This document shows, piece after piece, positions 3,040-45,800 of a stretch of DNA of 51,916 nt (its first letter is position 1; each line of letters begins with the position of its first letter). The translations under genes and the position numbers were made by a program. The DNA comes from Anaeramoeba ignava BMAN (Eukaryota > Protista > Anaeramoebae): the NCBI GenBank assembly GCA_028826165.1, contig JAPDFW010000046.1, forward strand, positions 1 through 51,916, given 5' to 3'. Below the pieces are notes generated by a model. The model made no database searches. It was given only the letters and a program-made list of their open reading frames with translations, and was not told the origin of the DNA.

Positions 3040-6000
3040 ATGAATAAAAATTTAACATTTAAAATTTATAGTCTTTCTCAATGGTTTCAATCAATTACTC
3101 AAAATATACTTAATTTTTCAATAAATGATACAAAATTATCACAAAATTTATGCGAATTAATAAATAAAATTGAACCAAATTCAATTAAAGAAATTTTTGA
3201 GTAAAAAAAAATTTTTTTCAATTTAAAAAATTTTTCTTTTTTAAATTTATATTTAAATTTATATTTTAGATCCCCTAAAAAAAATTATCAATCATTCATT
3301 AATTCTTGTATTAAATATGGAGTTTCAAAAGAATTTGCATTTAAACCAATTCAAATAATAAATCAAACAGAAAAAGAACCACTTATAAAATTACTTTTTG
3401 AATTAAAAAAACTTTATCAAAAGAAAAAGAATTTAAAATTTCAAGAAAATTTATTCCTTTCTTTAAATGAAAATGAAAATGAAAATTGGAAAAAAGATTT
3501 GGATTCAAATTTAAATTTAAATGAAATTAATGAATTTGTTCCTTTAAAACAAAAACAATATGAAATTTGTTCATCTTTAATTGCAGATTATTTTGTTAAA
3601 GGAAACGTTAAATTTCCAGTGAAAGTGATTTATTCTTCTCCAACAAATTTATCAGAAAATGAAGAACAAGAAATTGATGCCATTTTATATTTTGATAGAC
3701 AAACAATCCAAATATTGATTTTTGATGAACCATTTTTTGCACAAAAATATCTTGTTAATCAACAATTTCAAATACTTTTAAATACTGAAAAAGAAAATGA
3801 ATTTTTATTCCAAATTCAAGATAAAACTCCAATTTTATTAAAATGTGAAAGTTATATTGATCGTTACATTATTTATAAAACATTCATGTTGTTTCAAACT
3901 TATCAAAATCCAGATTCATTTGTTCAAATATTCACAAAATTTGGAGGAGAAATTTTGGAAAAAGAAAAAGAAAGAAAATTATTAATCAAGAAATTATTCA
4001 GCGATGGAGAAGTCCTATTCCAAAATGTCAAGGTTATTGATAAAGAATCAAATATTAAATCAGTTATTCTTCAATTAGAATTCGATCGATTATGTATCCT
4101 TTTTGAAACTGTGAATACTTCTCCTTTTTTCATTCATTTTAACCAAGTTTTCCAAGTTAATCCTGAATCAACAAATGAGAAAAACATCAAAATTGAATTT
4201 GGAAAAACAGAAATTCAAAATATAGTTTATCTGAATTGTGAAAATTCAAGTGCAAGAGATTTAATAATTGGATGTATTAATGAATATTATAATGAATATC
4301 AAAACAAAGTGAAAAGTGGAATTTCATTATCATTTCCAACAAAAACACCAACACCAACACCAACAAATACTCCAAATTTGACAACTCCTCCTCCAAATCA
4401 AGAATCTATTGTTCATCAACCATTTAAATTAGATCATTTTAAATGTGAAATTGAAACACAAAATAGCGAATTCATTCCAGCTATTATTCATCTCAAAAAT
4501 GATACTTTATATATTGAAACAGATTCTGATTCTTATTCTGATTCTTATTCCAATTTTGATTTCTCATTAATTAATCCCCAATATCCTACTATGATCAAAA
4601 TTCCTGATGCTTCTTCTCAAATTACCCTTTCATTAAAATTCAAGAACCAAGACAAACGTGATCAATTCAAAAATATTTACAACCTTTTGAAATCAAAATA
4701 TCAATCATTGGAATCTCGATTTGATTCTCATCCTCATTTTTTCAAAGCTCAATTTTATTCTTTGCAAATGGACAAAATTGCTGTTGGAACAATTCAATTT
4801 TATGGAAAAACAATTAATTTCCAATTTTCAAATTCTTCCATTTCAAGAAACATTTTCAATTCAAATCTCTTTTTAACTTATCATGATCCCATTTGCAGAT
4901 TGATTTTCAACAACAAAAAACATTTCGTTTTTGGATTTGAAACAGCAACAATGCAAAGAATATTTCTTCTTGAATACAAGAAAAGAAAAGAATATCAATT
5001 CCCTCAAGAAAATGAATCCCAAGAATCAAACGAAGAAATGAAAACAAACGAAGAAACAGAAAATCAATTCTTTGTTTCACAAAAATTTGAAGTTAGTATA
5101 GTTAATAATGAAAGAAATTTGATTGAAAAAGCAACAATTGGAATTACAGATAAAAATATTGAGATTGAATCATCAACAAAAAGACCAAATATTAGTTTTA
5201 AAGATGAAAATTTAAAAATTCAAACTATGGATGAATATTTACTAATCAAAATTAAATCAGAATTTAACGGAGATATTATTTTCAAATTTGAAAATCCAAA
5301 TGATTTTAGCAAAGCAACAAATTTAATACAAAAACAAAAACTCAGATACACATTATTATCAAGAGACACATTTGAACTTGAAACACCAAAGCCTCCAAAA
5401 CTTAACAGATCATTATCACCAGTTCAAACTGAAAAACCCAATTTCGCAAAGAAAGAAATCCAAACAGAAACTCCATCGCCTGATTTCATTTCAAATGAAA
5501 ATAATTTAATTGAACAAACTGTTCAAAAACCAATTTATTTTGAACATGAAAAATATACAAGTTTAACAGGATATGATCAATCAAAAGAAAATATCCAACT
5601 TGATTTTTCCATTTTGGATTCGAAGAAAATTTCCAATGAAATTAATCAAATTCAGAAAAATTTCTCACAAGGATCTGCCAAGTTTAATATTATCATAACA
5701 AACGAAAAGAAAAACGAAGAAATTTCAGCACAATTTATCATGATGGAAACAAAATTCAAAGTTATCAAAAATGATACATCAGTTTCGATAATTGAAAGTG
5801 CTTATTCATCACAAAGCAAAGTGAATTTACATCGAGGAAAAGGAAAATTTGATTTTGTATTGGAATTTACAGAAACAAATGAGAAAATCACCTTTAAAGT
5901 TCCTCAACTCAAAGATAATATTATATTATGGAAAACATTTATGATGCTTCAATATTATTCTCCTTCCAAAATTCGAAATAATAGAATTTCTTCATCAATT

Positions 6001-6936
6001 CTTGATGAAATTGAGGAAATTAATGCACTTATTTTCAAGTTTTGGGTCAATAATAATGCCATTTTCAATTTGGATACATTGACAAAAGATGAGAAATACA
6101 TCCCAGTTTTATTAAAAATTGATCGAAATCAATTATCAATAATTTCAACTAATTTTCAACCCACTTATATTTCTTGGAATGATAATGTGATTGATTTTTA
6201 TTTGGATTCTTCAACTCATCAAATTATCAAGATTCAATTTTCAGGAGAAAATCCTGAAAGTGAAATTTATTTTGCAACTAAAAACGAAATTGTTTCTGAA
6301 TTAGTTTATCGATCTTTGTTTATTTTCAAGTTTTTATGTCAGGATCAATTTAAGAAAGAGAAAATATTTATTAACAAACCTTATAATTTCCAAATTGAAA
6401 AAATTGAATCCAATCCAGATTATTTTCTTGATTTTATCAATTCATTACCAAGTTTTAAACAATATGCTAAATTTTTTGATAGAAATGAACCTAAAAAAAC
6501 ACTTTTTGATTCAAATTCTCAAAAATCTTTACAAATTTATAAAAGTAGTTTATCTGAATCTGATGAAATTGATAAAATTAAACAACAAAAGGAATCTCAA
6601 TTAATGGAAAAGATTCAAGAAAAAGCAAAAATTCTTTGGAAAAAATCTCCAATAGTTTTTCAAGTTCAAGTTATTTTTAATAGAAAATTATTTAATGGAA
6701 TTGTTAAATTGAAAAAAAAGAATTTGGAAATTCGTAATTTAATTTTTAAAACAAAAATGATTGAAAAATGGATAAATCTTAAAATTTTTGCTGATGATTT
6801 TGATGAATTTACTTTAATTTTTGGTTTAAAAGAAGGAAAAAATATTTCAGTTAGATTTGAATCAACTTATGATAAGAAATTATGTTTTTCAGCAATTAGT
6901 CAAAAAATTAATCAACTTTTTGGAAGAAAAATTTAA
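3040..6936 (+). CDS. Large protein with N-terminal calponin-homology (CH) domain followed by probable PH-like repeats; 1 intron (3201-3269)
   Basis: ATG at 3040 follows TTTTCATTTT repeats. The intron gtaaaa...ttttag joins exon 1 in frame to the 3499 ORF. The spliced N-terminus 'LSQWFQSIT...LCELINKIEPNSIKEIFESPKKNYQSFINSCIKYGVSKEFAFKP' fits the CH consensus. Later segments such as 'LKCESYIDRYIIYKTF' and 'RFESTYDKKLCFSAI' resemble PH C-terminal helices (weaker). Confidence 0.75.
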
Positions 6937-7026: not shown

Positions 7027-8325
7027 TTAATTTTGATTTTGATTTTGAATTTAATTTTAATTTTAATTTTAATTTTAATTTTAATTTTAATTTTAATTTT
7101 AATTAAATTTTGAAATAAATTTGTAAATAATTTTGAAATAAATTTTTAAATAAATTTTTAAATAAATTTTGAAATAATTTTTAAATAAATTTGTAAATAA
7201 ATTTTGAAATAAATTTTTAAATAAATTTGTAAATAAATTTGAAATAAATTTTAAATAAATTTGTAAATAAATTTTGAAATAAATTTTAAATAAATTTGTA
7301 AATAAATTTTGAAATAATTTTTAAATAAATTTTTAGAAATAAATTTGAAATAAATTTTTAAATAAATTTTTGAAATAAAATTTGAAATAAATTTTGAAAT
7401 AAATTTTGAAATAAATTTTTAAATAAATTTTGAAATAAATTTTGAAATAAATTTGAAATAAATTTGTAAATAATTTTTAAATAAATTTTGAAATAAATTT
7501 TTAAATAAATTTTGAAATAATTTTTGAATAAATATTTAAAATAAATTTTGAAATAATTTTTGAAATAAATTTGGAAATAAATTTTTAAATAAATTTGTAA
7601 AATAAATTTTGAAATAAATTTGTAAATAATTTTTGAAATAAATTTTTAAATAAATTTTTAAATGAATTTTGAAATAAATTTTTAAATAAATTTTGAAATA
7701 AATTTTGAAATAAATTTTTAAATAAATTTTGAAATAAATTTTGAAATAAATTTTTAAATAAATTTTTAAAATAAATTTAAAATAATTTTTAAATAAATTT
7801 TTTAAAATAATTTTTAAATAAATTTTAAAATAAATTTTTAAATAAATTTTAAATAAATTTTAAATAAAATTTGAAATAAATTTTTGAAATAAATTTTGAA
7901 ATAAATTTGTAAATAAATTTGTAAATAAATTTTTAAATAAATTTTTAAATAAAATTTGAAATAAATATTTAAAATAAATTTTAAATAATTTTAAAAAATA
8001 AATTTTTGAAATAAAATTTAAAATAAATTTTTGAAATAAATTTTTAAATAAATTTTTAAATAAAATTTGAAATAAATTTTGAAATAAATTTTTAAATAAA
8101 TTTTGAAATAAATTTTGAAATAAATTTTTAAATGAATTTGAAATAAATTTGTAAATAAATTTGTAAATAAATTTTGAAATAAATTTTGAAATAAATTTTG
8201 AAATAAATTTTTAAATAAATTTTGAAATAAATTTTTAAATAAATTTTAAATAAATTTTAAATAAATTTTTAAATAAATTTTTAAATAAATTTGTAAATGA
8301 ATTTGAAATAAAATTTGAAATAAAT
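7027..8325. repeat. Degenerate 12-13-bp tandem repeat (aaataaattttg / aaataaattttt / aaataaatttgt) between convergent genes
   Basis: Direct reading; roughly 100 imperfect units. Confidence 0.9.
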
Positions 8326-11300
8326 TTAATTATTGGATTCCTTTTTAACTGAGAAAATATTAGTTTGAAAAGCTTGTTCTAAATTTGTAACATAATCCTT
8401 ATATCTTGAAATCAAAGATGTTGAACTATCTGAAACTTGAAATTCTTGTGTTTTAATTTCTTCAATTTCAATTTCCTCTTTTTCTTTTTTTTCATTTTCA
8501 GATTCAACAGATGAATATTTGCAAAAGGTAAATTGAGGTGTATTTTTCAATAAATTAAATGAATTTAAACTAAAAGTTTCAGCTTCAAGATTTGATAAAA
8601 CTAACTGTTCTTGAAGAATAAAAAATTGTTGATTTTGATTTTGATTTTGATTTTGGTTTTGATTTTGATTTTCATTTGATTTTTTTAATGAATTTTTTTC
8701 ATTTTCTTGTGAATTTATATCTGGAATATAATGTCTAATTTTTTCTGATTGAAAAATTGCAAATTTATCAAGTGAACTAATTTCAAGAATTTTTTTCAAA
8801 GGAAGATGAAAATTTTGCCAAGAAATTCTTCTACAAATATCAAAATCTCTTAAAAGTTCCAAAGACAATTTGAAATCAATTTGGTTTTTATGATTTTGAT
8901 TTTGATTTTGATTTTGATTTTGATTTTGAATTGGATTTTGATTTTGAATTTGAATTGGATTTTGATTTTGATTTTTATCATTTGAAATATTAATTTGTTT
9001 ATCAACTTTTGCTTGATCTTCTTTTTTTTTCTTTTTATCTTTTTGATCTCCTTTTTTCTTTTTTTTATCTTTTTTATTATCTTCTTTTTTATCATCTTTA
9101 TCTTTTTTATCTTGATCTTCTTTATCTTTTTTATCTTCTTCTTTTTTATCTTCTTTATCTTTTTTATCTTCTTTATCTTTTTTATCTTCTTTATCTTTTT
9201 TATCTTCTTTATCTTTTTTATCTTCTTTATCTTTTTTATCTTCATCTTCTTTTTTAAAATATTGAACAAAATATTTTGTAATATTTTGTTTGCTATCATC
9301 CTTTTTAATTTCATTATTTCCATTTTTCATTTCATTTATAATTTCTGGTTTTTTCAAATGAATTTTTTGAGGAATAAATTTATATTCAGAAATAACACCA
9401 TCTTTTGTTGCTCGATAAAAATTATAATCATGATTAAAAATTGTTGCAATCGGGACATAAAAGGATTTTCTTTGATGATCTAATGTTTGTTTAGGTGAGA
9501 AATCTTCTTCTGATTCATTAGACATTTTCCAAGAAGATATTGCTGGGATTTTTGCTAAACTTGAATATTTTTTCGGTTGATTTTTCTATTAAATTTTAAA
9601 TTGAAAAAATAACGGAAAAAAATTTTTTTTTCAAATTCGGGAAAATTTTTTTTTGAATATTGAAATCATTTTGGATTTTGTTTTGTTATTGATTTACTTC
9701 AGAACTTGAACCAGTATTGAAATTTGGTTTGCTTTGAAATTCATAATCAATTTCATTTCCATGAATATTAATTGGGAAAATATGAGTAGTTTCTCTATGA
9801 CTTGTTGCAACAAACCATTTGGAATCAAGACTAAATGATAATTCTTGAATAAATGCTGATGTTCTTCCTCTTGAAAATGTGTAAATGTGTTTGATTTCTG
9901 TTTCTGTTTTTTTGTTTATATCTTCAGAAAATTTCAAGTTATTGTTTTCATCAATAATATATTTCTTTTTTTCTTGGAAATTTTTAGGGTTTATTTTATA
10001 AACATGGAGTTCTTTTCCTGTAGATGAAGTAACTAACTAAAATATTAATTAAAATATTTTTTCATTTTTTAAATTGAAATGTTTTTAAAATTTTTTAAAT
10101 TGAATTGAAATATTAACCATTGTTCCTGTTGGATCAAATTGGAGACAAGTTATTGAATGTTTATGTGCTTGAAAATGTGATATAATTTCTTTAGTTTCAA
10201 GATCTTGAATAATAATTGTTCCTTTTGATGAATCTTTTGAATTTATAAAAGGAATTTTCTTTAAAAAATTATCAGTTTGTTTGTTTGATTGATTTTTTAT
10301 ATCATTTTTTGGAGGTTCATTTGCTGGATAAGCTATTAATTGGGTTCCAAGTGCAAAAATGGGATGATCCAATTTATTTGGATAAATTTTCACAGTAAAT
10401 TTAGTTTGAAAAGTTTTTGAATCAACAATTAAAATTTGATTTATAACTTCAACTGCTATAATTCCAGGTGATGTTGAGAATCCAATAATACTTGTATTAA
10501 ATGAAATATCTTCTTGTTCTTGAGTTTTTAAAGAAAATAGTTTGAGTTTTGTTGAGGCAAAATCATGTTGTGGGCTTTGTTTTAAAAAAACAATTTTTTT
10601 ACATTTAAAATTAAATTTATTTATTATTATTATTAAATTTATTATTTTTACAGAATTAAAACATGTAGATCATCTGTTGGTTCAGTTGGTTGAATAAACT
10701 AAAACAATTTCAAAAAATTTATTATTAAAATTATAAATAAAATTATAAATAAAATTATAAATAAAAATTATAAATAAATAAAATTATAAAATTATAAATA
10801 AAATTATAAATAAAATTATTAATAAAATTATAAATAAAATTATAAATAAAATTATAAATAAAATTATAAATAAAATTATAAATAAAATTATAAATAAAAT
10901 TATAAATAAAATTATAAATAAAATTATAAATAAAATTATAAATTAAATTATAAATTAAAATTATAAATAAAAATTATAAATAAAATTATAAATAAAATTA
11001 TAAATAAAATTATAAATAAAATTATAAATAAAATTATAAATAAAATTATAAATTAAAATTATAAATTAAATTATAAATTAAATTATAAATTAAATTATAA
11101 ATTAAATTATAAATAAAATTATAAATTAAATTATAAATTAAAAATAAATAAATAAAATTATAAATAAAATAATAAATAAAATTAAAATTATAAATAAAAT
11201 TATAAATTAAATTATAAATTAAAATTATAAATAAAATTATAAATAAAATTATAAATAAAATTATAAATAAAATTATAAATAAAATTATAAATAAAAATTA

Positions 11301-12947
11301 TAAATAAAATTATTAAATAAAATTATAAATAAAATTTAAATAAATAAAATTATAAATAAAATTATAAATAAAATTATAAGCAAATAAAATTATAAATAAA
11401 ATATAAATAAAATTATAAATTAAATTATAAATAAAATTATAAATAAAATTATAAATAAAATTATAAATTAAAATTATAAATTAAATTTATAAATAAAAAT
11501 TATAAATAAAAATTATAAATATAAATAAAATTAAAATTATTAATTAAATTATAAAATAAAAATTATAAATAAAATTATAAATAAAATTTATTAAAATTAT
11601 AAATTAAATATAAATAAAATTATAAATAAAATTATAAATAAAAATTATAAATAAAATTTAAATAAAATTATTAATTAAAATTATAAAATAAAATTATAAA
11701 TAAAAATTATAAAATAAATTATTAAATAAAATTATAAATAAAATTATAAATAAAATTATAAATAAAATTATAAATAAAAATTATAAATAAAAATTATAAA
11801 TAAAATTATTAATAAAATTATAAAATAAAAATAAAATTATAAATAAAATTATAAATAAAATTATAAATAAAATTATAAATAAAATTATAAATAAAATTAT
11901 AAAATAAAAAATTATAAATATAAATATAAAAAATATATAAATAAAAATTATTAAATAAAATTGGTTATAAATAAAATTATAAATAAAATTCATAAATAAA
12001 ATTATAAATAAAAATTATAAATAAAATTATAAATAAAAATTATAAATAAAATTATAAACAAAAATTATAAATAAAATTATTAATAAAAATATAAATAAAA
12101 ATATAAATAAAATTATAAATTAAATTATAAATAAAATTATTAATTAAATTATAAATAAATTATAAATTAAATTATAAATAAAATTATAAAATTAAATTAT
12201 TAATAAAATTATAAATAAAAATTATAAATAAAATTATTAATAAAATTATACTAAAATTATAAATAAAATTATTAATAAAATTATAAATAAAATTATAAAT
12301 AAAATTATAAATAAAATTATAAATAAAATTATAAATAAAATTATAAATAAAATTATAAATAAAATTATAAATAAAATTATAAATAAAATTATAAATTAAA
12401 TTATAAATAAAATTATAAATAAAATATAAATAAAAATTAAAATTATAAAATAAAAATAAAATTATTAATAAAATTATAAATAAAATTATTAATAAAATTA
12501 TAAATAAAATTATAAATAAAATTATAAATAAAATTATAAATAAAATTATAAATAAAATTATAAATAAAATTATTTATTAAGTTTGCTATTCCAATTTTTT
12601 ACTTTAATAGATTTTGGTCTAAATTGAAAACGAATTGATATTAATTCTTCAAGAGGTTCATTTGGGTTATTAACATCCCAAATTTGAAAACCTTTCAAAT
12701 AACCAACAATTAAAAAAAGTTTTCTTTTATTAAGAGAATGAATAAAAAAATCTTCAAAAGATAAAAAAACAATCTGTTCTTTATCATCAAATGATTTTTC
12801 TTGTGAATTTGATGTAATTTTGGTTTTAACAGCTTTGGGAATAATTTTTCTACCAATTTGATAAGTATTTGTAAATAAATTTGTAAAAAATGAATTATTT
12901 GGTTTTCTTTCTTCTGATTTATGATTAATTTTTAAATGATTTTCCAT
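8326..12947 (-). CDS. BCAS3/ATG18-like (PROPPIN-related) WD40 protein, multi-exon, with KDKED/NQ low-complexity C-terminus
   Basis: Motifs 'LIVGYLKGFQIWDV', 'PIFALGTQLIAY', 'HFQAHKHSITCLQFDPTG' and 'HIYTFSRGRTSAFIQELSFSLDSKWFVATSHRETTHIFPINIHG' match BCAS3-family motifs. Introns include 12602-10699 and 10651-10575; the later junctions are approximate. Confidence 0.8.
10725..12572. repeat. 11-bp tandem repeat (aaattataaat) filling the first intron of the BCAS3-like gene
   Basis: Direct reading; it lies between donor 12602 and acceptor 10699 on the minus strand. Confidence 0.92.
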
Positions 12948-26388: not shown

Positions 26389-27447
26389 ATGGAATATAAA
26401 GTGATTGGTTTAATGTCAGGAACTTCACTTGATGGAGTTGATATTGCATATTGTATTTTTCAACAAAAAGAAAATAAATGGGAATTTAAAATTGAAAAAG
26501 CAGAAACAATAGAATATCAAGAAGAATGGAGAAAAAAATTAAGAAATATTGAAAATTCAACAGCTTTTGATTTTGTAAAAACAAATATTGAATATGGAAT
26601 TTTTTTGGGAAATTTAGTGAAAAATTTTATTGAGAAAAATCAAATCAATCCCAAATTAATTGGTTCACATGGACACACAATTTTTCATCAACCAGATCAA
26701 CAAATCACATGCCAAATCGGGGATGGAGCAATGATTAGCGCCATTTCTCAACTTCCTGTTGTTTGTGATTTTAGGAAATTGGATGTTGCTTTAAATGGAC
26801 AAGGCGCTCCTTTAGTTCCAATTGGTGATCTTCTGTTATTTTCAGATTTCCCTATTTGTTTAAATATCGGTGGAATAGCTAATGTTTCTTTTGATTTAAA
26901 CGGAATTAGAATTGCTTTTGATATTTGCCCAGCCAATATGGTTCTTAATTTTTTGTCAGAAAAAAAAGGTGAACTTTTTGACAGCAACGGAAAAATGGCA
27001 AAAAATGGAAATCTTGATGAAGAATTATTAACAAAATTAAATTCCCTTGATTTTTATAATAAAAATGAACCAAAATCTTTGGGTAAAGAATGGGTTTTTC
27101 AAAAAATTATCCCAATTTTGAATGATTCTCAAATTTCTATTGAGGACAAATTAAGAACTTTTTCTGAACATATTTCGTTTCAAATTGCAAAATCACTCCA
27201 AAAATTGGAAAAGTCTTTGAATTTGTTGATAACTGGAGGTGGTGCTTATAATTCTTTTTTGGTTCAAAAAATCCAAGAAAAAACTCATCATAATGTTGTT
27301 ATTCCTTCAAAAGAAATTATTGATTATAAAGAAGCTCTTATTTTTGCTTTTCTTGCTCTTTTAAGAAAAAATAATCAAATTAATACTTTGAAATCAGTAA
27401 CTGGAGCTAAAAAAGATAGTATTGGAGGTTGTTTATATTTTAATTAA
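26389..27447 (+). CDS. anmK: Anhydro-N-acetylmuramic acid kinase (AnmK family), intronless, bacterial type
   Basis: Hallmark motifs 'IGLMSGTSLDGVD', 'IGSHGHTIFHQP', 'DFRKLDVALNGQGAPLVPIGD', 'LNIGGIAN', 'AFDICPAN', 'PKSLGKE', 'GGGAYNSFL', 'KEALIFA' and 'SVTGA'. Confidence 0.93.
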   Translation: MEYKVIGLMSGTSLDGVDIAYCIFQQKENKWEFKIEKAETIEYQEEWRKKLRNIENSTAFDFVKTNIEYGIFLGNLVKNFIEKNQINPKLIGSHGHTIFHQPDQQITCQIGDGAMISAISQLPVVCDFRKLDVALNGQGAPLVPIGDLLLFSDFPICLNIGGIANVSFDLNGIRIAFDICPANMVLNFLSEKKGELFDSNGKMAKNGNLDEELLTKLNSLDFYNKNEPKSLGKEWVFQKIIPILNDSQISIEDKLRTFSEHISFQIAKSLQKLEKSLNLLITGGGAYNSFLVQKIQEKTHHNVVIPSKEIIDYKEALIFAFLALLRKNNQINTLKSVTGAKKDSIGGCLYFN

Positions 27448-31391: not shown

Positions 31392-34300
31392 ATGAATAAA
31401 AATAAAATTTATAAAATTATAAAAGAAAATGAAATTGAAAAAATTAAAGAAATTATAAAAGAAATTAATAATGAAGAAAAAGATAAAAAGAAAATAATAA
31501 AATATTCAATAAAACAAAAAGTTTCCAAAGAAATAATTGAATATTTAATAACAGAATTATTTAATAATAATGATAATAATGATATTAATTTTAAAGATAA
31601 AAAAAGAAGAAATTTATTACAAATTTCAATTATAAATCAATCAAAAATTGAAATAATTAAATTATTAATTAAAAAAGGAATTAATATTAATTCAAAAGAT
31701 AAAAAAGGAAAAACAATTATTCATTATTTAATAAAATATTTAAAAAATGAAAAAGAATTAATTGAAATTATTGAATATTTAATTTCCAAATAAAATTAAT
31801 AATATAAATGAAAAAACAAACAGACACAAAACAATATTACATTATGCATGTGAATATAATTCAATTAAAATTATTGAATATTTACTTTCCAAAGAAAATA
31901 ATAATATAAATGAAAAAACAAATGAAAATAAAACAGTTTTACATTTTGCATGTCAAAATAATTCAATCGAAGTTATCGAATATTTACTTTCCAAAGGAAT
32001 TAATATAAATGATAAAACAAAACAAAATAAAACAGTTTTACATTACGCATCTAAAAGCAATTCAATTGAAGTTATTGAATATTTAATTTCAAAAGGAATT
32101 AATATTAATTCAAAAACAAATAAAAATGAAACAATTTTACATTCTGCATCTAAAAAGAATTCACTTGAAGTTATTAAATATTTAATATCCAAAGGAATTA
32201 ATATTAATTCAAAAACAAATCAAAATCAAACAATATTACATTACGCCTGCTACAATAATTCAATTAAAGTTATTGAATATTTAATATCCAAAGATCTTGA
32301 TATTAATTCAAAAACCAAAAGGAACGAAACAGTTTTACATTACGCATCTAAAAACAATTCACTTGATGTTATTGAATATTTAATTTCCAAAGATCTGGAT
32401 ATTAATGCAAAAACAAGAAGGAACGAAACAATTTTACATTATGCATGCCAAAAGAATTTATTTGAAGTTATTAAATATTTAATTTCCAAAGGTGTTGATA
32501 TTAAATGCAATTACAAATGATAACGAAACAGCTTTACATTTTGCTTTTCGAAACAATCCATCATTTAAAGTTATTAAATATTTAATTTCTAAAGGTGTTG
32601 ATATAAATGCAATTACAAGTGCCAATGAAACAGCTTTACAATTAGCTTGTCAAAACAATCCATCAATTCAAATTATTGAATATTTAATTTCCAAAGGTGT
32701 TGATATTCATGAAAAAACCAAATGGAATGAAACACTTATTCATTTGGTTTGTGAAAATAATACATCAATTGAAGTTATTGAATATTTAATTTCTAAAGGA
32801 ATTGATATTAATGAAAAAAACATATGGAATGAAACAGTTTTACATATAGTTTGTCAATATAATACATCACTTGAAATTATTGAATATTTAGTTGAAAAAA
32901 GTGTAGATATTTATTCAAAAACAAATTATAATGAAACAGCTTTACATTATGCTTTTGAGAATCAAAATAATCCATCACTTGAAGTTATTGAATATTTGAT
33001 TTCTCAAGGAATTGATATTAATGATAAAATTGATCAAAATAAAACAGTTTTACATTTAGCTTGTAGAAATAATTCACCAATTCAAATTATTGAATATTTA
33101 ATTGAAAAAGGCCTTGATATTAATGCAAAAACAAATTATGATGAAACACCTTTACTTTTAGCTTGTGAATCCAATTCACTTGAAGTTATTCAATATTTAA
33201 TTTCCAAAGGTGCTGATATTAATGCAAAAACAGATTATAATGAAACAACTTTACATTTAGCTTCTAAAAATAATTCACTTCAAGTTATTGAATATTTAAT
33301 TTCCCAAGGTGTTGATGTCAATGCAAAAACAGGTTATAATGAAACAGCTTTACATATAGCTTGTAGATATAATTCATCATTTGAAGTTATTGAATATTTG
33401 ATTTCCAAAGAAATTGATATCAATGCAAAAACAAATGGAAATGAAACAGTTTTACATTTTGCTTGTAGAAATAATCCATCAATTCAAATTATTGAATATT
33501 TGATTTCCAAAGAAATTGATATAAATGAAAAGACAAATAGAAATGAAACACTTTTACATTTTGCTTGTCAAAGTAATCCATCGCTTGAAATTATTGAATA
33601 TTTAGTTGAAAAAGGAATTGATATTAATGCAAAAACAAATAGAAATGAAACTGCTTTACATATTGCTTGCAGAAATAAACCATTTGAAATTATTGAATAT
33701 TTAGTTGAAAAAGGAATTGATATTAATGCAAAAACAAATTCAAATCAAACAGCTTTACATATTGCTTGTGAATATAATTCACCACTCGAAGTTATTGAAT
33801 ATTTAATTTCAAAGGAATTGATACTAATGCAAAAACAAATCAAAATAAAAATGCTTTACATTATGCTTGCCATTATAATCCATCAATTCAAACTATTGAA
33901 TATTTAATTTCCAAAGGAATTGATATTTATGCAAAAACAAATGAGAACGAATCAGCTTTACATTATGCTTGTCAATATAACCCTTCGCTTGAAGTTATTG
34001 AATATTTGATTTCCAAAGGTCTTGATATTAATGCAAAAACAAATCAAAACCAAACAGTTTTACATTTAATTTCCAGATTTAATTCAATTCAAACTGTTCA
34101 ATATTTAGTTTCCAAAGGAATTGATATTAATGCAAAAAATAATCAAAATGAAACAGCTTTACATTTAGCTTGCCGATTCAATTTTTTTCAAATTATCCAA
34201 TATTTAATTTCCAAAGGAATTGATATTAATGCAAAAACAAATCAAAATGAAACAGCTTTACATTATACTTGCCAAAACAATCCTTCATTAAAAGTTATTC

Positions 34301-39243: not shown

Positions 39244-39508
39244 TTTTAAATTTTCCATTTTTCATTTTTTTCATTTTTTTTCATTTCAAAAAATAAAAAT
39301 AAATAAATAAAATGAATAAAAATAAAATTTATAAAATTATAAAAGAAAATGAAATTGAAAAAATTAAAGAAATTATAAAAGAAATTATTAATGAAGAAAA
39401 AAATAAAAAGAAAATAATAAAATATGAGAGATTCGAGGCACAAAAAAATAAATAAAAAAAAAAGCCTTTGAAAGCCTTTCATGCCCCAAAAATTATTCTA
39501 TTCTCAAT

Positions 39509-39645
39509 TAAATTTTTTTTTTCCTATAATTTTAATAAAAGATCTTATTTAAATTTTTTTTTTCCTATAATTTTAATAAAAGATCTTATTAAATTTTTTT
39601 TTCCTGTAATTTTAATAAAAGATCTTATTTAATTTTTTTTTTCCT
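39509..39645. repeat. Left subterminal repeat of transposon: ~40-bp unit x3 + partial
   Basis: Unit aaatttttttttcct(a/g)taattttaataaaagatcttatt. Confidence 0.85.
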
Positions 39646-39713
39646 GAATTTGGATTTAAAAGAAAAATTTTTGTTTGTTTTGATCCATTTTTCCTTTTCT
39701 TTTTTTTTTTGAA

Positions 39714-40241
39714 ATGTCACTTTTTTTTGTTACTTTTTCAAACAAATTTGCGCTTTTTCAAGTTGAAAAAATAATCAATTTCAAAAATTTCCGGAAAGAA
39801 ATTTCGTTCATCTTTTCTTTGAGGAATGAAATAAAATCATTCTACTATTTCTTTCTCCAAAAGAAAATTGAAATCAAAAATAATTCGAGTTTGGAAATCT
39901 TTGTTGGTTTGGTCAAGAAGAAACATGAGGATTTAGAAGTTTATGGAAATATTGGGGTTTTACACATAAATTATGAATCAAAGATTAAAAAAAACCTAAA
40001 AAAGGAAGTAAATGGAACAGTAAAGCAATTTATCCACAAGAATTCATTTCTTACTTTGAATGAGACCAATTTTTCTGTATATTGCTCAATATGCGATAAA
40101 GAACTCCAAGGAATCTCTAAATGGAAAATTCAAAGACATTGTAGGTCACAACATCATCGCCTTCTTATTCCTTTGAATTTACAGCAACAGAAGAATGAAG
40201 GAAGATGCAACTTTGATTCAAAAGAATCAGCCTTACTTTAG
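39714..40241 (+). CDS. Zinc-finger ORF of the transposon (probable N-terminus of transposase, out of frame by 1 nt)
   Basis: 'YCSICDKELQGISKWKIQRHCRSQHH' is a C2H2-type finger. The ORF overlaps the 40195 ORF in another frame. Confidence 0.6.
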   Translation: MSLFFVTFSNKFALFQVEKIINFKNFRKEISFIFSLRNEIKSFYYFFLQKKIEIKNNSSLEIFVGLVKKKHEDLEVYGNIGVLHINYESKIKKNLKKEVNGTVKQFIHKNSFLTLNETNFSVYCSICDKELQGISKWKIQRHCRSQHHRLLIPLNLQQQKNEGRCNFDSKESALL

Positions 40242-42597
40242 AATCCTAGAACATTTACAAACGTTCTCAAACACAGATTTTTATTCCAGGAAAGAAATTC
40301 CAACTTATAGAACAGGCCTCTCTAAAAAAAGGATTTTCAAGCAAATATCTGATTCATTACCCAATGTAGATTATAGAAAATTTTGCTTTTATTCGAGTCA
40401 TTATTTCTGTTTGAAACACAATACACCAATTTTCTTCCAATGTGAAAAGTGTGCAAATCCTAATCCTCAAAAAGTGGCGAATCACAGAAATAAAGTTCAA
40501 ATGATGAGAAATTTCTTTAAAGATGAAGTACAAGATCCCACAAAACTAGTTATTATTTTAGATTTCGGAGAGAACATACAAGAATATCGAGATGGGTGGA
40601 ATACTCAAGAATTTTACATCAAAAATTCATGGGTTATCTTCAATATATGTTTAATTCAAGGAACTGAATTTGAATATTACGATTATATCTCAGAAGAGAA
40701 AAGCAAAGTAATGTTATAGAATTTAGAATTTAGAATTTACAAGAAAAACTTAAAAAAATCTTAATTTTGTTTTAGGATTCGGTATTTGTGATGGAATCTT
40801 TAGGAAAATTTGCACAAATTTTAGATCAAAAACAACGAAAAAAAAAACTAAGTTCTTATGAAAGCATTTCAATTTTTAGTGACGGAGGATCTAGTCTCAA
40901 AAATAATTTGGTGATTCCAACAATAATTCAACTCTTCTCTTCTAATTTTAAGAAAATTACCATTGGATATTTTCTCACAAATCATGGTAAAAATTACAGT
41001 GATGCCCATTTCGGCAATATTTCAAGAAATAGATCAAGCTTTGGGAATATAAGAACAATTGAAGAGTTGGATAATTATCTGAAAACTCTGAAGAACACTT
41101 TTTCAACAATTATGTCAGTTGACCGTTCGATTAAATATTCCTACACACAAGGAATTCCATATCTGAAAAAAACTCATTTATTTTTTTATGATAAAGGTCA
41201 TTTTGAAGCCTGGTTTAATCCCCAAAGAAGAGGACGTAAAAGAAGAATTCCAATAATCAAGAAGATTCAAATTTATGATAAAGATTTAGCCAATCATAAT
41301 TTTCAGATTCAAGATGTGAATGAAAAAAATCACTCAAAATTAATACAGCCAATATCTCAAAATCTTCCAATTTCAAGAAAGGAGAACGAAAAGGATGTTG
41401 ATAATCAACAAAAAGAAGAAAACCAAAAGCGACCATTTCTGAGCCAAAAAATTACAAAAAGCAAGAAAAGAAAAAATCAAATGATAGAAATTGATAACGA
41501 AAATCAACAAATTGAAAAGAAAAACAAATCTAACAAGATTCCTGAATTGGAAATTCAGAATTTACTTCCCTTAAACCAAAATTTGAATAGAGAAAACCAG
41601 GTAAAACTAAAAAAAAGAAAATATTTTCTTTTGTGTGCTTCTCTTTCTGATTTTCTTTGAATATTGTGTTTTATAGGTAATTCAAACAATCCCCAACTCT
41701 GGAAATTCATGTTATATCGCATCAATTGTCCAGATTTTGATCAGGACATCAGCTCGAAACCTTCTTCCTTTAGGAGATATCTCAGAAAAATTATGGGATA
41801 TTTTTAATTCAAAGCAAAGATATATAGAAGTCCAAGATTTGAGAAAGGAAGTAGGTAAGCATTTTGTCAATTTTGATAATTTGAACCAACAAGATCTACA
41901 CGAATTTTTTATTAATTTATTTGAATTATTGGACAAGGAAACAATTTTAGATATTCCAGATAAAGATGATCTTTTGTATCACGCCTTTGATTTATGGAAT
42001 AAAACTATTTTGAATGATTTTTGTATTCGCTTAATTCAAAAAGTGAAATGCTTGGAATGTAAACATTTTTCCTTTAGTTTTCCTCAAGAAATAGGTATAC
42101 TGCTAAGTTTAGAAAGTGAAAAAGATTGTAACTTAATAGAATTGCTCAATTCATTTTTCTCAAAAAATTACTTTGATGAAAACAATCTCCTATTTTGTGA
42201 ACATTGTCAAAAAAAAGTTCAAAGTTCTTTCCAATTCTTTTTAATTCATATTCCCAAATTTTTCATGATATTTGTCAAAAGAAGCTTCTATGATCCAATT
42301 TTGAAGGAAGAAAGAAAAAATATGGCAAGAATACAAGTTCCAAGAAAGATTCAACTTAATAATTTTTTATTCTCTCCTTCTAGTTCTATGTCAAACTCAT
42401 TGTCATTTTGGGGATCAATTCATCACCAAGGAGAAGAACAAGAAGCAAAAGGAGGTCATTTCTGGGCTGAAGTGAAAGATGAAAGAAATGCTGGAGATTT
42501 TCAAGTTTTTGATGATTCGACAACTTTGACTATTCCTAATCCTTGCCGGAAATCGAATTCATATGTCTTGATGACATATCAAAGAGATGATAAGTAA
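40195..42597 (+). CDS. Spliced Sola2-type DDD transposase fused to ubiquitin-specific protease (peptidase C19); exons 40195-40707, 40776-41600, 41677-42597 (752 aa from this ATG)
   Basis: Triad motifs: 'VIILDFGENI' (D 40561), 'IFSDGGSSLKN' (D 40881), 'FLTNHGKNYSDAHFG' (D 41001). USP motifs: 'PNSGNSCYIASIVQIL' (C 41710), 'QQDLHEFFINLFELL', 'CLEC...CEHC', 'HHQG...GGHFWA' (H 42457), 'FDDS'. Both introns are GT-AG and phase 0. Confidence 0.85.
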
Positions 42598-42631
42598 ATA
42601 TTCCATTCAAATTCAACTAATCTCTTTTTTC

Positions 42632-42800
42632 TTTGATTGATTTTTCTTGATTGATTTTTCTTGATTGATTTTTCTTGATTGATTTTTTTTGATTGATTTT
42701 TTTTGATTGATTTTTCTTGATTGATTTTTCTTGATTGATTTTTTTTGATTGATTTTTCTTGATTGATTTTTCTTGATTGATTTTTTTTGATTGATTTTTC
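42632..42800. repeat. Right subterminal repeat of transposon: 14-bp unit (ttgattgattttt[c/t]) x~12
   Basis: Direct reading. Confidence 0.88.
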
Positions 42801-45800
42801 AAAAAATAAAAATTTCCCCATTAGCCTTTTGCGGCCTCAAATTTTCAGGTTTCACAAAAGAATTTTTAATTTATTTTTCAATAAAAAGGGGAATTTTTTT
42901 TTAAATATTTTGAGATGTTTTTGCCTCTCCCTTTCTCTCATATTCAATAAAACAAAAAGTTTCCAAAGAAATAATTGAATATTTAATAACAAAATTATTT
43001 AATAATAATAATAATGATAATGATATTAATTTTAAAGATAAAAAAAGAAGAAATTTATTACAAATTTCAATTATAAATCAATCAAAAATTGAAATAATTA
43101 AATTATTAATTAAAAAAGGAATTGATATTAATTCAAAAACAGAAGAAAATGAAACAGCTTTACATTTTGCTTGCCAATATCATTCATTTGAAGTTATTAA
43201 ATATTTAGTTGAAAAAGGAATTGATGTTAATATCAAAAGAATTGATCAAAAAATAGCATTACATTTGGCATGTCAATATAACTCATTTGAAGTTATTAAA
43301 TTTCTTATTGAAAATGGATCTGATATTAATTCACAAGCAGATGCAAAATTATCTCCTTTATATTTTGTTTTGAAATACCAAAAATCAATTGAGATGATCA
43401 AATTTCTTGTTTCAAAAGGAGCTGATCCTACTTTAACAACTTTATTTAATGAAACGCCTTTACATCTTGTTTGCCAATATCAAAAACCAAATGAAATCAT
43501 TGAATATTTCATTTCAAAAGGAATTGATATTAATTCAAAAAATATAAATCATGAAACAGTTTTACATCTTGTTTGCCAATACAAACAACCACTTGAAATT
43601 ATTGAATATTTGATTTCCAAAGGAATTGATATTAATTCAAAAACAAATGGAAATGAAACAGCTTTACATTATGCTTGCAAATTTCAAAATACACTAAAAG
43701 TTATTCAATATTTAATTTCCAAAGGTGTTGATATTAATGCAAAAACAAAATGGAATGAAACAGCTTTACATTATGCTTTTAGCCATAAAAATTCAAATGA
43801 AATTATTAAATTTCTTATTGAAAAAGGAATTGATATTAATGTGAAATCAGATTTTAATGAAACAGTTTTACATATAGCTTGTAAAAATCCTAATTCAATT
43901 GAAATGGTTAAAATTCTTGTTGAAAAAGGAATTGATATACATGCAACAACAAATCAAAATCAAATAGCTTTACATATCGCTTCTTTCTTTAATTCGTTGG
44001 AAATTGTTAAACTTCTTGTTGAAAAAGGAAGCGATATTAATTCAACAATTTCATATCGAGAAGAAACAGCTTTACATTTAGCATGCCAAAACAATCCATC
44101 AATTGAAATTGCTAAATATTTAATCTCAAAAGGAATTGATATTAATGCAAAAACAATTGAAGGTAAAACAGCACTACATTATGCATGCCAAAATAATTCC
44201 TCTCTTGAAGTTATACAATATTTAGTTGAAAAAGGAATTGATATTAATGCAAAAACCAATTACAATAAAGAAACAGCTTTACATTTTGCTTGTCAAACTA
44301 ATTTACCACTTAAACTTATTGAATATTTAGTTTCTAAAGGTGTTGATATTAATTCTCAAACAATAAATAATGAAACACCTTTGCATCATGCTTGTGGTAA
44401 CATAAATGAAAACTCACTTGAAATCATCAAATTTCTTGCTTCAAAAGGAGCTGATATCGCTGCTCAAACAAGATATAATCAAGCTACACCTTTGCATTTT
44501 GCTTGTCAACATCAAAATCAAAACCAAAATGAAAATTTATTTGAAGTTATCCAATTTCTTGTTTCAAAAGAAATGGAATTAAAAACTCACATAAACAAAA
44601 CCTCAAATCAAACTTCAGATCACGATCATCTCATTTATTTCAGGAAAGTGCCATCTGGTTATTTAACATTCAATCGAAAAACGCCTCTTCATCTTTTTTG
44701 TGAAAACGGAAATCTTAATTCGAATTCAATCCAAATTATCAAATTTCTTCTTGAATCAGGAATTGATATAAATGCAAAAACTTCATATGGAGAAGAAACA
44801 GCTTTGCATTGTTTGTGCAAAAATAAAAATCAAGAAAATTCGAACGAATTGATCAAATGTCTTATAGAAAAAGGAATTGATATTAATGCAAAAACAAATG
44901 AAAATCAAACTGCTTTACATTTAGCTTGTCAAAATCAAAATAAAAACTCAATTGAATTGATCAAATGTCTTATAGAAAAAGGAATTGATATAAATGCAAA
45001 AACAAAAAGAAATCAAACTGCTTTACATTTTGTTTGCCAAAATAAAAATCCAAATTCGTTTGAAGTTATAAAATTACTTGTTTCCAAAGGAATTGATATT
45101 AATGCTAAAGTTTACAACAACCAATCAGCTTTGCATATTATTTATCAATATCAACCTCCAAAATCATTTGATATTACGAAATTTCTTATTGAATCAGGAA
45201 TTGATATTAATGTAAAAACAAGTCACAATGAAACAGCTTTACATTTTACTTTGAAATATCAAAGCAATTTATTTGAATTTGTTGAATATTTGATTTCCAA
45301 AGGAATTGATATAAATGCAAAAACAAATCAAAATGAAACTGCTTTACATTACGCTTCTGAAAGGAATTCATCAATTCAAATTGTTAAATATTTAATTTCC
45401 AAAGGTGCTGATATTAATTCAAAAACAAATCAAAATGAAACTGCTCTTTCAATATCAATTAAAAAACAAAATGAAAATATAATCAAATTTTTATTAATGA
45501 ATAATGCGAATATTGATGATTTAAAAAAAGAATATATCACACAAGAATTTATTGATTTAATTCCACAAATTTATTCAATTAATGAAGATATGAATAATTT
45601 ATTAAAATCAAATAATCAATTTTCAGATTTAATAATTCAATCAAATGATTTATTCAAATTTAAAGTTCATAAATTAATATTATTAACAAGATTTGATAAT
45701 AATGAATTAATTTTACAAAAATTTATTAATAATTGTTATCAAAAACCAAAAAAAGAAATTGAAATTATTTTAAATTTTATTTATACTGGATTTTATAATT

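Follow-up and report, generated by a model that had tools for sequence, protein, structure and literature searches.

The window analysed here is the entire 51,916-bp contig JAPDFW010000046.1 (assembly GCA_028826165.1) of Anaeramoeba ignava, an anaerobic, free-living amoeba and a metamonad. It carries a Sola2-like DNA transposon (39426-42939) whose transposase gene continues, across a predicted intron, into a ubiquitin-specific protease (USP, peptidase C19). The transposase and the USP are linked in at least four element families of this species, in one of them within a single open reading frame (ORF), and the USP appears to be under long-term purifying selection.

The boundaries of the element were established from the host gene that it interrupts. 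The 3,514-bp insertion has ATAT on both sides and ends in GAGAGA and TCTCTC, and its left and right flanks together read as a single ankyrin-BTB N-terminus. Such genes form a tandem array in the right half of the window, and the 5' piece of the interrupted gene (Table 1) matches the N-termini of the paralogs at 31392, 35416, 46400 and 50537. The empty site with a single ATAT was found in four window paralogs, at 31500, 35521, 46508 and 50639, so the boundaries are exact and not due to chance; the insertion with an ATAT duplication and GAG..CTC ends that had been proposed from the letters of the DNA was thereby confirmed. The G+C content is 27% for the element versus 18% for the whole window. 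The NCBI annotation merges the element with the ankyrin genes that follow it in one chimeric model of 3,018 aa, which starts at 39714 (L015, 14299 onwards). At least five near-identical ankyrin-BTB genes were seen between 31392 and 51916, one broken by the element and the others apparently split into several ORFs.

Two further full-length copies, 98% and 97% identical to the window element, were found on different contigs (L001, 5719-9199, and L002, 4321-7717, respectively). They have the same ends, ATAT duplications and unrelated flanks, and they keep the USP exon, as the sequence-only reading had expected of other copies. Since three near-identical copies have different flanks and empty sites exist, the window family has been recently mobile, with repeated and independent insertions. 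A second family is represented by L003 (5311-9100, GAGTGAT ends) and a third by L004 (4599-9227, GAGAGA ends). All five complete elements have GAG..CTC ends and terminal inverted repeats (TIRs) of 6-8 exact bases that are imperfect further in; in the short TIR of the window element the 6 outermost bases are identical, and a GAGGC(A)AAAA motif is shared with a shift of 2 nt. The target-site duplication (TSD) is ATAT in 5/5 complete elements and does not vary among copies as had been expected, which points to an apparently strict target, although ATAT is palindromic and invariant, so that a 4-bp TSD is indistinguishable from a 0- or 2-bp one in these copies alone.

The exon-2 core was searched against 1.84 billion representative proteins and matched P0001 (834 aa, 98%), P0002 (852 aa, 43%), P0003 (973 aa, 40%), P0004 and P0005. 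All five are A. ignava proteins, and P0001-P0004 carry the UCH domain. In the window element, two GT-AG introns of phase 0 join stop-free frames, as previously described, and both predicted introns are 78-84% A+T. The junction of intron 1 is also present in the NCBI gene model P0001. Intron 2 has the same position in L003, lies 12 codons further upstream of the catalytic Cys in a fourth family (L005) and is absent in L004; its retention in the window family would give a stop after 19 codons. The frame of exon 3 opens at the acceptor TAG, and the conserved frame begins exactly at the acceptor. Since the first Met of exon 3 is residue 197 and the catalytic Cys is residue 12, the Cys would be translated only through the splice, which agrees with the earlier placement of the Cys box upstream of the called ORF. 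In the window element, L003 and L005 alike, exon 3 has no Met ahead of the catalytic Cys, and a separate USP gene was rejected on this ground.

The 752-aa protein proposed earlier, with a start at 40195, had to be replaced. It omitted ORF 39714-40241, which is the true 5' part of exon 1 and carries the zinc finger, and the protein starts at 39714 and has about 912 aa. The 912 codons are the sum of the exon lengths (331+275+306), and the exons were searched singly or via the natural database proteins P0001-P0003. In the window copy as assembled, one additional T at about 40237 breaks the frame, and L001 and L002, which do not have it, read straight into the 40195 ORF. A third intron between the ORFs at 39714 and 40195 was rejected, the sister copies simply being in frame. 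Because the assembly is Nanopore-based (and Pilon-polished; PMC11550330) and 1-bp indels are scattered in most other copies too, a homopolymer assembly error is as likely as a real mutation.

Exon 3 was assigned to C19/UCH with the Pfam UCH profile (E 4.9e-22, 79.2 bits, curated cut-off 23.9), in agreement with the first assignment, and the USPs of the sister families scored 88.6 and 129.1 bits. The expected USP residues were all located in it, namely the Cys (41710-41712), the QQD motif (41887), the CxxC pairs of the finger (42049 and 42196), the His (42457-42459) and the Asp (42511-42513). The catalytic Cys and His are present in all three complete families, and the third residue is Asp (window, L004) or Ser (L003). 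The best matches in the PDB were human USP8, USP15 and USP2, with E 3.5e-13 for exon 3 and 4e-25 for the USP of L004. The catalytic domains of these human enzymes likewise have Cys and His boxes and a zinc finger, whereas the USP of the element is minimal, about 300 aa, and is devoid of host regulatory domains. Searches with exon 3, with residues 140-520 of P0003 and with an alignment as query returned A. ignava proteins only, which reflects the word and length limits of the search. Stand-alone USPs 24-25% identical to that of L004 were seen in two IMG/VR viral contigs (L013, 1457-2239; L014, 3001-3786), with no transposase near them, and no relative of the transposase was found in viral contigs.

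The proposed fusion of transposase and USP was upheld in the families of the window element, L003, L004 and L005, and in L004 it holds without any splicing assumption, because ORF 7159-8862 of this copy (567 aa) is unbroken from the SDG and HGK transposase motifs through the complete USP. The L004 family, which is 40% identical to the window family, has intron 1 only, and L004 itself is an apparently intact 4.6-kb copy. L003 has both introns at the window positions. In the decayed family of L005 the transposase is followed by a phase-0 intron and the USP Cys box and then by frameshifts, and a fifth, heavily decayed family (L006) has no USP remaining. Identity between the element families is only 35-42%, and between their USPs 22-40%.

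Selection on the USP exon was estimated between the window element and L003, as the sequence-only reading had suggested. The exon gave pN 0.38, pS 0.66 and a ratio of non-synonymous to synonymous change (dN/dS) of 0.34, next to 0.32 for the transposase core, and comparisons with L004 gave 0.43-0.51; all these ratios are rough because synonymous sites are near saturation. The deficit of amino-acid changes in the USP was strong (Fisher p 1e-10). Given this deficit and the near-equal ratios, constraint on the USP is, on the substitution pattern, about as strict as on the transposase, and the domain is no neutral passenger. Between L002 and the window copy, 23/38 in-element substitutions fall in a 285-bp part of the USP exon (window 41750-42034; binomial p 4e-16), many of them non-synonymous, which suggests either exchange with a diverged subfamily, through recombination or gene conversion, or a USP surface that evolves fast.

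Table 1. Coordinates of the Sola2-USP element and the interrupted host gene in the window (TSD, target-site duplication; TIR, terminal inverted repeat).
Feature	Coordinates	Strand	Remarks
Interrupted host ankyrin-BTB gene, 5' piece, 37 codons	39312..39421	+	frame resumes 42944
Left TSD, ATAT	39422..39425	.	empty site in four paralogs
Left terminus, imperfect TIR (GAGAGA..GAGGCAC..)	39426..39447	+	identical in L001, L002; related ends in L003, L004
Tandem repeat of 39-41 bp, about 3.5 copies, 5' non-coding region	39507..39651	.	
Exon 1	39714..40707	+	true start 39714; 36% identical to P0002 N-terminus, E 2e-31
C2H2/BED-like zinc finger in exon 1	40083-40157	+	
CxxC..H motif in exon 1	40441	+	
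First catalytic Asp, exon 1	40561	+	DFGEN context
Intron 1 (predicted), GT-AG, phase 0, 68 nt	40708..40775	+	position shared with L003, L004, L006; close by in L005
Exon 2, transposase catalytic core	40776..41600	+	SDGG Asp 40881, HGK 40983, third Asp 41001
Charged Asn/Gln-rich linker with basic stretches resembling nuclear localization signals, end of exon 2	41301-41600	+	
Intron 2 (predicted), GT-AG, phase 0, 76 nt	41601..41676	+	
Exon 3, USP/peptidase C19 domain	41677..42597	+	stop 42595-42597
Tandem repeat of 14 bp, 12.4 copies, 3' non-coding region	42626..42800	.	copy number differs among sister copies
Right terminus, imperfect TIR (..GCCTCTCCCTTTCTCTC)	42918..42939	-	
Right TSD, ATAT	42940..42943	.	

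The transposase is of the DDE type with an RNase-H fold as judged from its predicted structure. The AlphaFold model of the transposase region of P0003 (predicted local distance difference test score 81) matched IstA, Mos1 and retroviral integrases best (best E 4e-5), and the alignments show hardly any variation at the three Asp, which stand in DF, SD and HGKxxxD contexts. With the transposase, Pfam gave a weak DUF7869 match only, and a PDB sequence search with the transposase profile gave weak zinc-finger matches only. Sola2 termini were reportedly described by Bao in 2009 as 5'-GRG ... CYC-3' with short TIRs. The order of the motifs CxxC, H, DF(K/G)EN, YYD, (S/C)D(G/N) and HGKSxCDxHF is, by eye, the same as in Sola2_PPa-1 and Sola2_DFa-2, and on this visual comparison the assignment to Sola2 appears well supported. 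Amoebozoan Sola2 elements have 4-bp A+T-rich TSDs, ATAT among them, and short imperfect TIRs, and DFa-2 ends in GAG..CTC (PMC3627910). The A+T-rich TSD, the GAG..CTC ends, the D-D-D triad, the RNase-H fold and the dispersed copies together bear out the Sola2-like identity first suggested for the element.

We propose that this autonomous-type, cut-and-paste Sola2 element encodes a single multidomain protein, in the order of a possible ubiquitin-like domain, a zinc finger, the RNase-H DDD transposase, a charged linker and a USP deubiquitinase (DUB). Both introns of the window family would be spliced, so that the USP would never be produced apart from the transposase. The latter would bind the short TIRs, excise the element and insert it at ATAT. 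The tethered USP would be active and would work mainly in cis, removing ubiquitin, probably as degradative chains of the K48 type, from the transposase itself or from proteins of the transposition complex, and would prolong the life of the transposase against the host ubiquitin-proteasome system. An ancestor of the USP-bearing families may have captured a USP2/8/15-like catalytic domain, of host or viral origin, and kept it. We give this cis role a probability of about 0.6. The closest solved USPs (USP8/15/2) are general chain-cleaving enzymes, and the VTD DUBs of Helitrons, whose activity covers K48, K63 and K11 chains, have been proposed to shield transposition proteins from the proteasome (PMC9741609). 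Protection from proteasomal turnover and action on chromatin or repair factors had both been put forward in the sequence-only reading, and both are plausible.

Several observations weigh against the cis role and the family history behind it. No USP was found in the available DNA of six close metagenomic Sola2 relatives (L007-L012), the transposase of L007 ending in a stop codon, so Sola2 transposition in general does not need a USP. In the tree of the catalytic core, the four USP-bearing families cluster together with four sequences from the environment (support 89/93), a topology compatible with one origin of these families as well as with several. Among the five complete elements L004 alone looks intact, the gene models P0001, P0002 and P0004 all stem from the same annotation pipeline, and the saturation of synonymous sites limits the precision of the selection estimates.

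The next most probable explanation, which we nevertheless regard as unlikely, is that the substrates of the USP are host proteins present at the donor or target site, such as ubiquitinated histones, PCNA or other repair factors, or silencing proteins, and that the USP so opens chromatin or steers double-strand-break repair. The fusion brings the DUB to DNA ends, and the same role has been proposed for the ULP and OTU domains of Ginger (PMC2836005). The transposon-linked AACRNL clears its own locus of repressive chromatin (PMC12957317), and yeast Ubp8, an H2B deubiquitinase, was among the PDB matches, less close than USP8/15/2. However, no domain that would target substrates is apparent, and the solved USPs closest to that of the element cleave chains and are not histone-specific.

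Exon 1 may also encode a ubiquitin-like domain, at aa 1 to about 90. The first 90-120 residues gave beta-grasp matches to PB1 (E 0.16), to the Crinkler N-terminal ubiquitin-like domain (E 6e-4) and, as the top PDB match, to ubiquitin (E 0.86), all below the curated cut-offs (window 39714-39998; P0002, 1-95; P0003, 1-118), and we treat the fold as a lead and not as a finding. A Crinkler (CRN) effector was rejected, as only P0003 matches, with 21 bits versus a cut-off of 24.6, and the window element and P0002 gave no match; the gene lies within an element bounded by TIRs and TSDs and not in the architecture of a secreted effector. If the domain is real, the N-terminal ubiquitin-like domain, the Sola2 core and an active C-terminal USP might form a three-part, ubiquitin-handling transposase that regulates or processes itself and counters ubiquitin-based transposon defence. 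The host setting of this doubtful reading is the greatly expanded set of BTB-type ligase adaptors, and if true it would be the first case of post-translational anti-transposon defence and counter-defence of such a type.

Improbable in our view is a use of the USP, perhaps with the N-terminal domain, for self-processing or regulation, by cleavage of a ubiquitin-like leader or by an isoform switch in which retention of intron 2 yields a transposase that lacks the USP. The three weak beta-grasp matches and the stop 19 codons into the retained intron would fit such a use, but the matches fall below the curated cut-offs, the N-terminal domain was not seen to be followed by a di-Gly motif for cleavage, and isoform switching cannot be general because L004 has no intron 2. 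Still less credible is a USP that was captured once and is useless to the element, whether inactive or neutral. Sola2 relatives without a USP exist and the USP is strongly diverged between families, yet its 300-codon frame and catalytic residues are kept across them despite near-saturated synonymous sites, and its dN/dS equals that of the transposase core, so that this explanation is largely refuted by the selection result. That the fusion is an annotation artefact, with the USP a gene of its own within the element or a neighbouring host gene, can practically be dismissed. In the window the link hangs on a predicted intron, but five elements have the USP between TSD-bounded termini, no start codon precedes its Cys, and for L004, where the USP and the transposase core share one ORF, the artefact is refuted.

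Capture of an extra gene by Sola2 has been described for DFa-2 (Dictyostelium fasciculatum) and PPa-1 (Polysphondylium pallidum), where the cargo is a separate Fanzor1 nuclease in elements of 10-15 kb (PMC3627910), whereas the A. ignava elements measure 3.4-4.6 kb, have an apparently strict ATAT target and carry as cargo a USP joined to the C-terminus of the transposase. From another metamonad, Trichomonas vaginalis, a protein that combines a DDE transposase with a C19/USP ubiquitin hydrolase has been cited (XP_001314237.1, transposase_11 with Peptidase C19; PMC2836005). Its transposase is set apart by the published description as pfam01609 and not Sola, and the two C19 fusions are most likely independent captures. 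In Ginger1, Mutator/MULE, Helitron and related elements a cysteine isopeptidase is likewise found C-terminal to the transposase, often across introns, but these proteases are of the C48 (Ulp1) or OTU type and the transposases belong to other superfamilies (PMC2836005). A USP-family (UCH) domain has been stably captured by Helentrons (HLE2) and is enriched in two of their subgroups (PMC11417382), and VTD carriers also bear a deubiquitinase, the activity of which has been shown (PMC9741609). Helentrons and VTD carriers differ in being rolling-circle elements with RepHel and in having no DDE transposase and no comparable TIR or TSD. No published Sola transposase-USP fusion and no report of these Anaeramoeba elements was found in the literature searched, outside which most subscription papers and Repbase Reports lay. 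The novelty claimed earlier stands for the Sola-USP combination and not for USP/C19 domains on DNA transposons, which were already published (PMC2836005, PMC11417382).

Isopeptidases (Ulp1, OTU, VTD, C19) have been captured repeatedly by unrelated DNA transposons, and Sola2-USP adds an independent capture in another transposon superfamily. The long-term purifying selection, the apparently intact L004 and the close USP-less relatives as natural controls make it a useful case, and a small single-gene element with a mutable catalytic Cys would allow a direct test of whether hosts restrain transposases via ubiquitin. Other copies of the element are annotated in A. ignava as host 'ubiquitin carboxyl-terminal hydrolase'; several genes of that name are transposons, and host USP counts are inflated.

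Repeats based on TTGATTGA follow the stop codon in three families (window 42626-42800; L003, about 8900-8940; L004, 8878-9070, where the orientation is reversed), and may serve as a 3' signal or may just be a repeat common in the genome. The second-family element L003 lies within an almost pure A+T tandem repeat (4880-5310 and 9101-9860), near a tRNA-like sequence at ~9880-9950. Directly after the decayed Sola2-USP copy of L005, ORFs with exo/endonuclease domains (7826-11694 and 13028 onwards) probably represent non-long-terminal-repeat retrotransposons. Elsewhere in the window, a 1,145-aa ORF at 3499-6936 that gave no Pfam match adjoins a stretch of about 3 kb, almost free of G+C, with which the contig begins. 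A single ORF at 26389-27447 encodes an anhydro-N-acetylmuramic acid kinase (AnmK; Pfam E 2e-67), a bacterial-type peptidoglycan-recycling gene that was likely acquired by lateral transfer.

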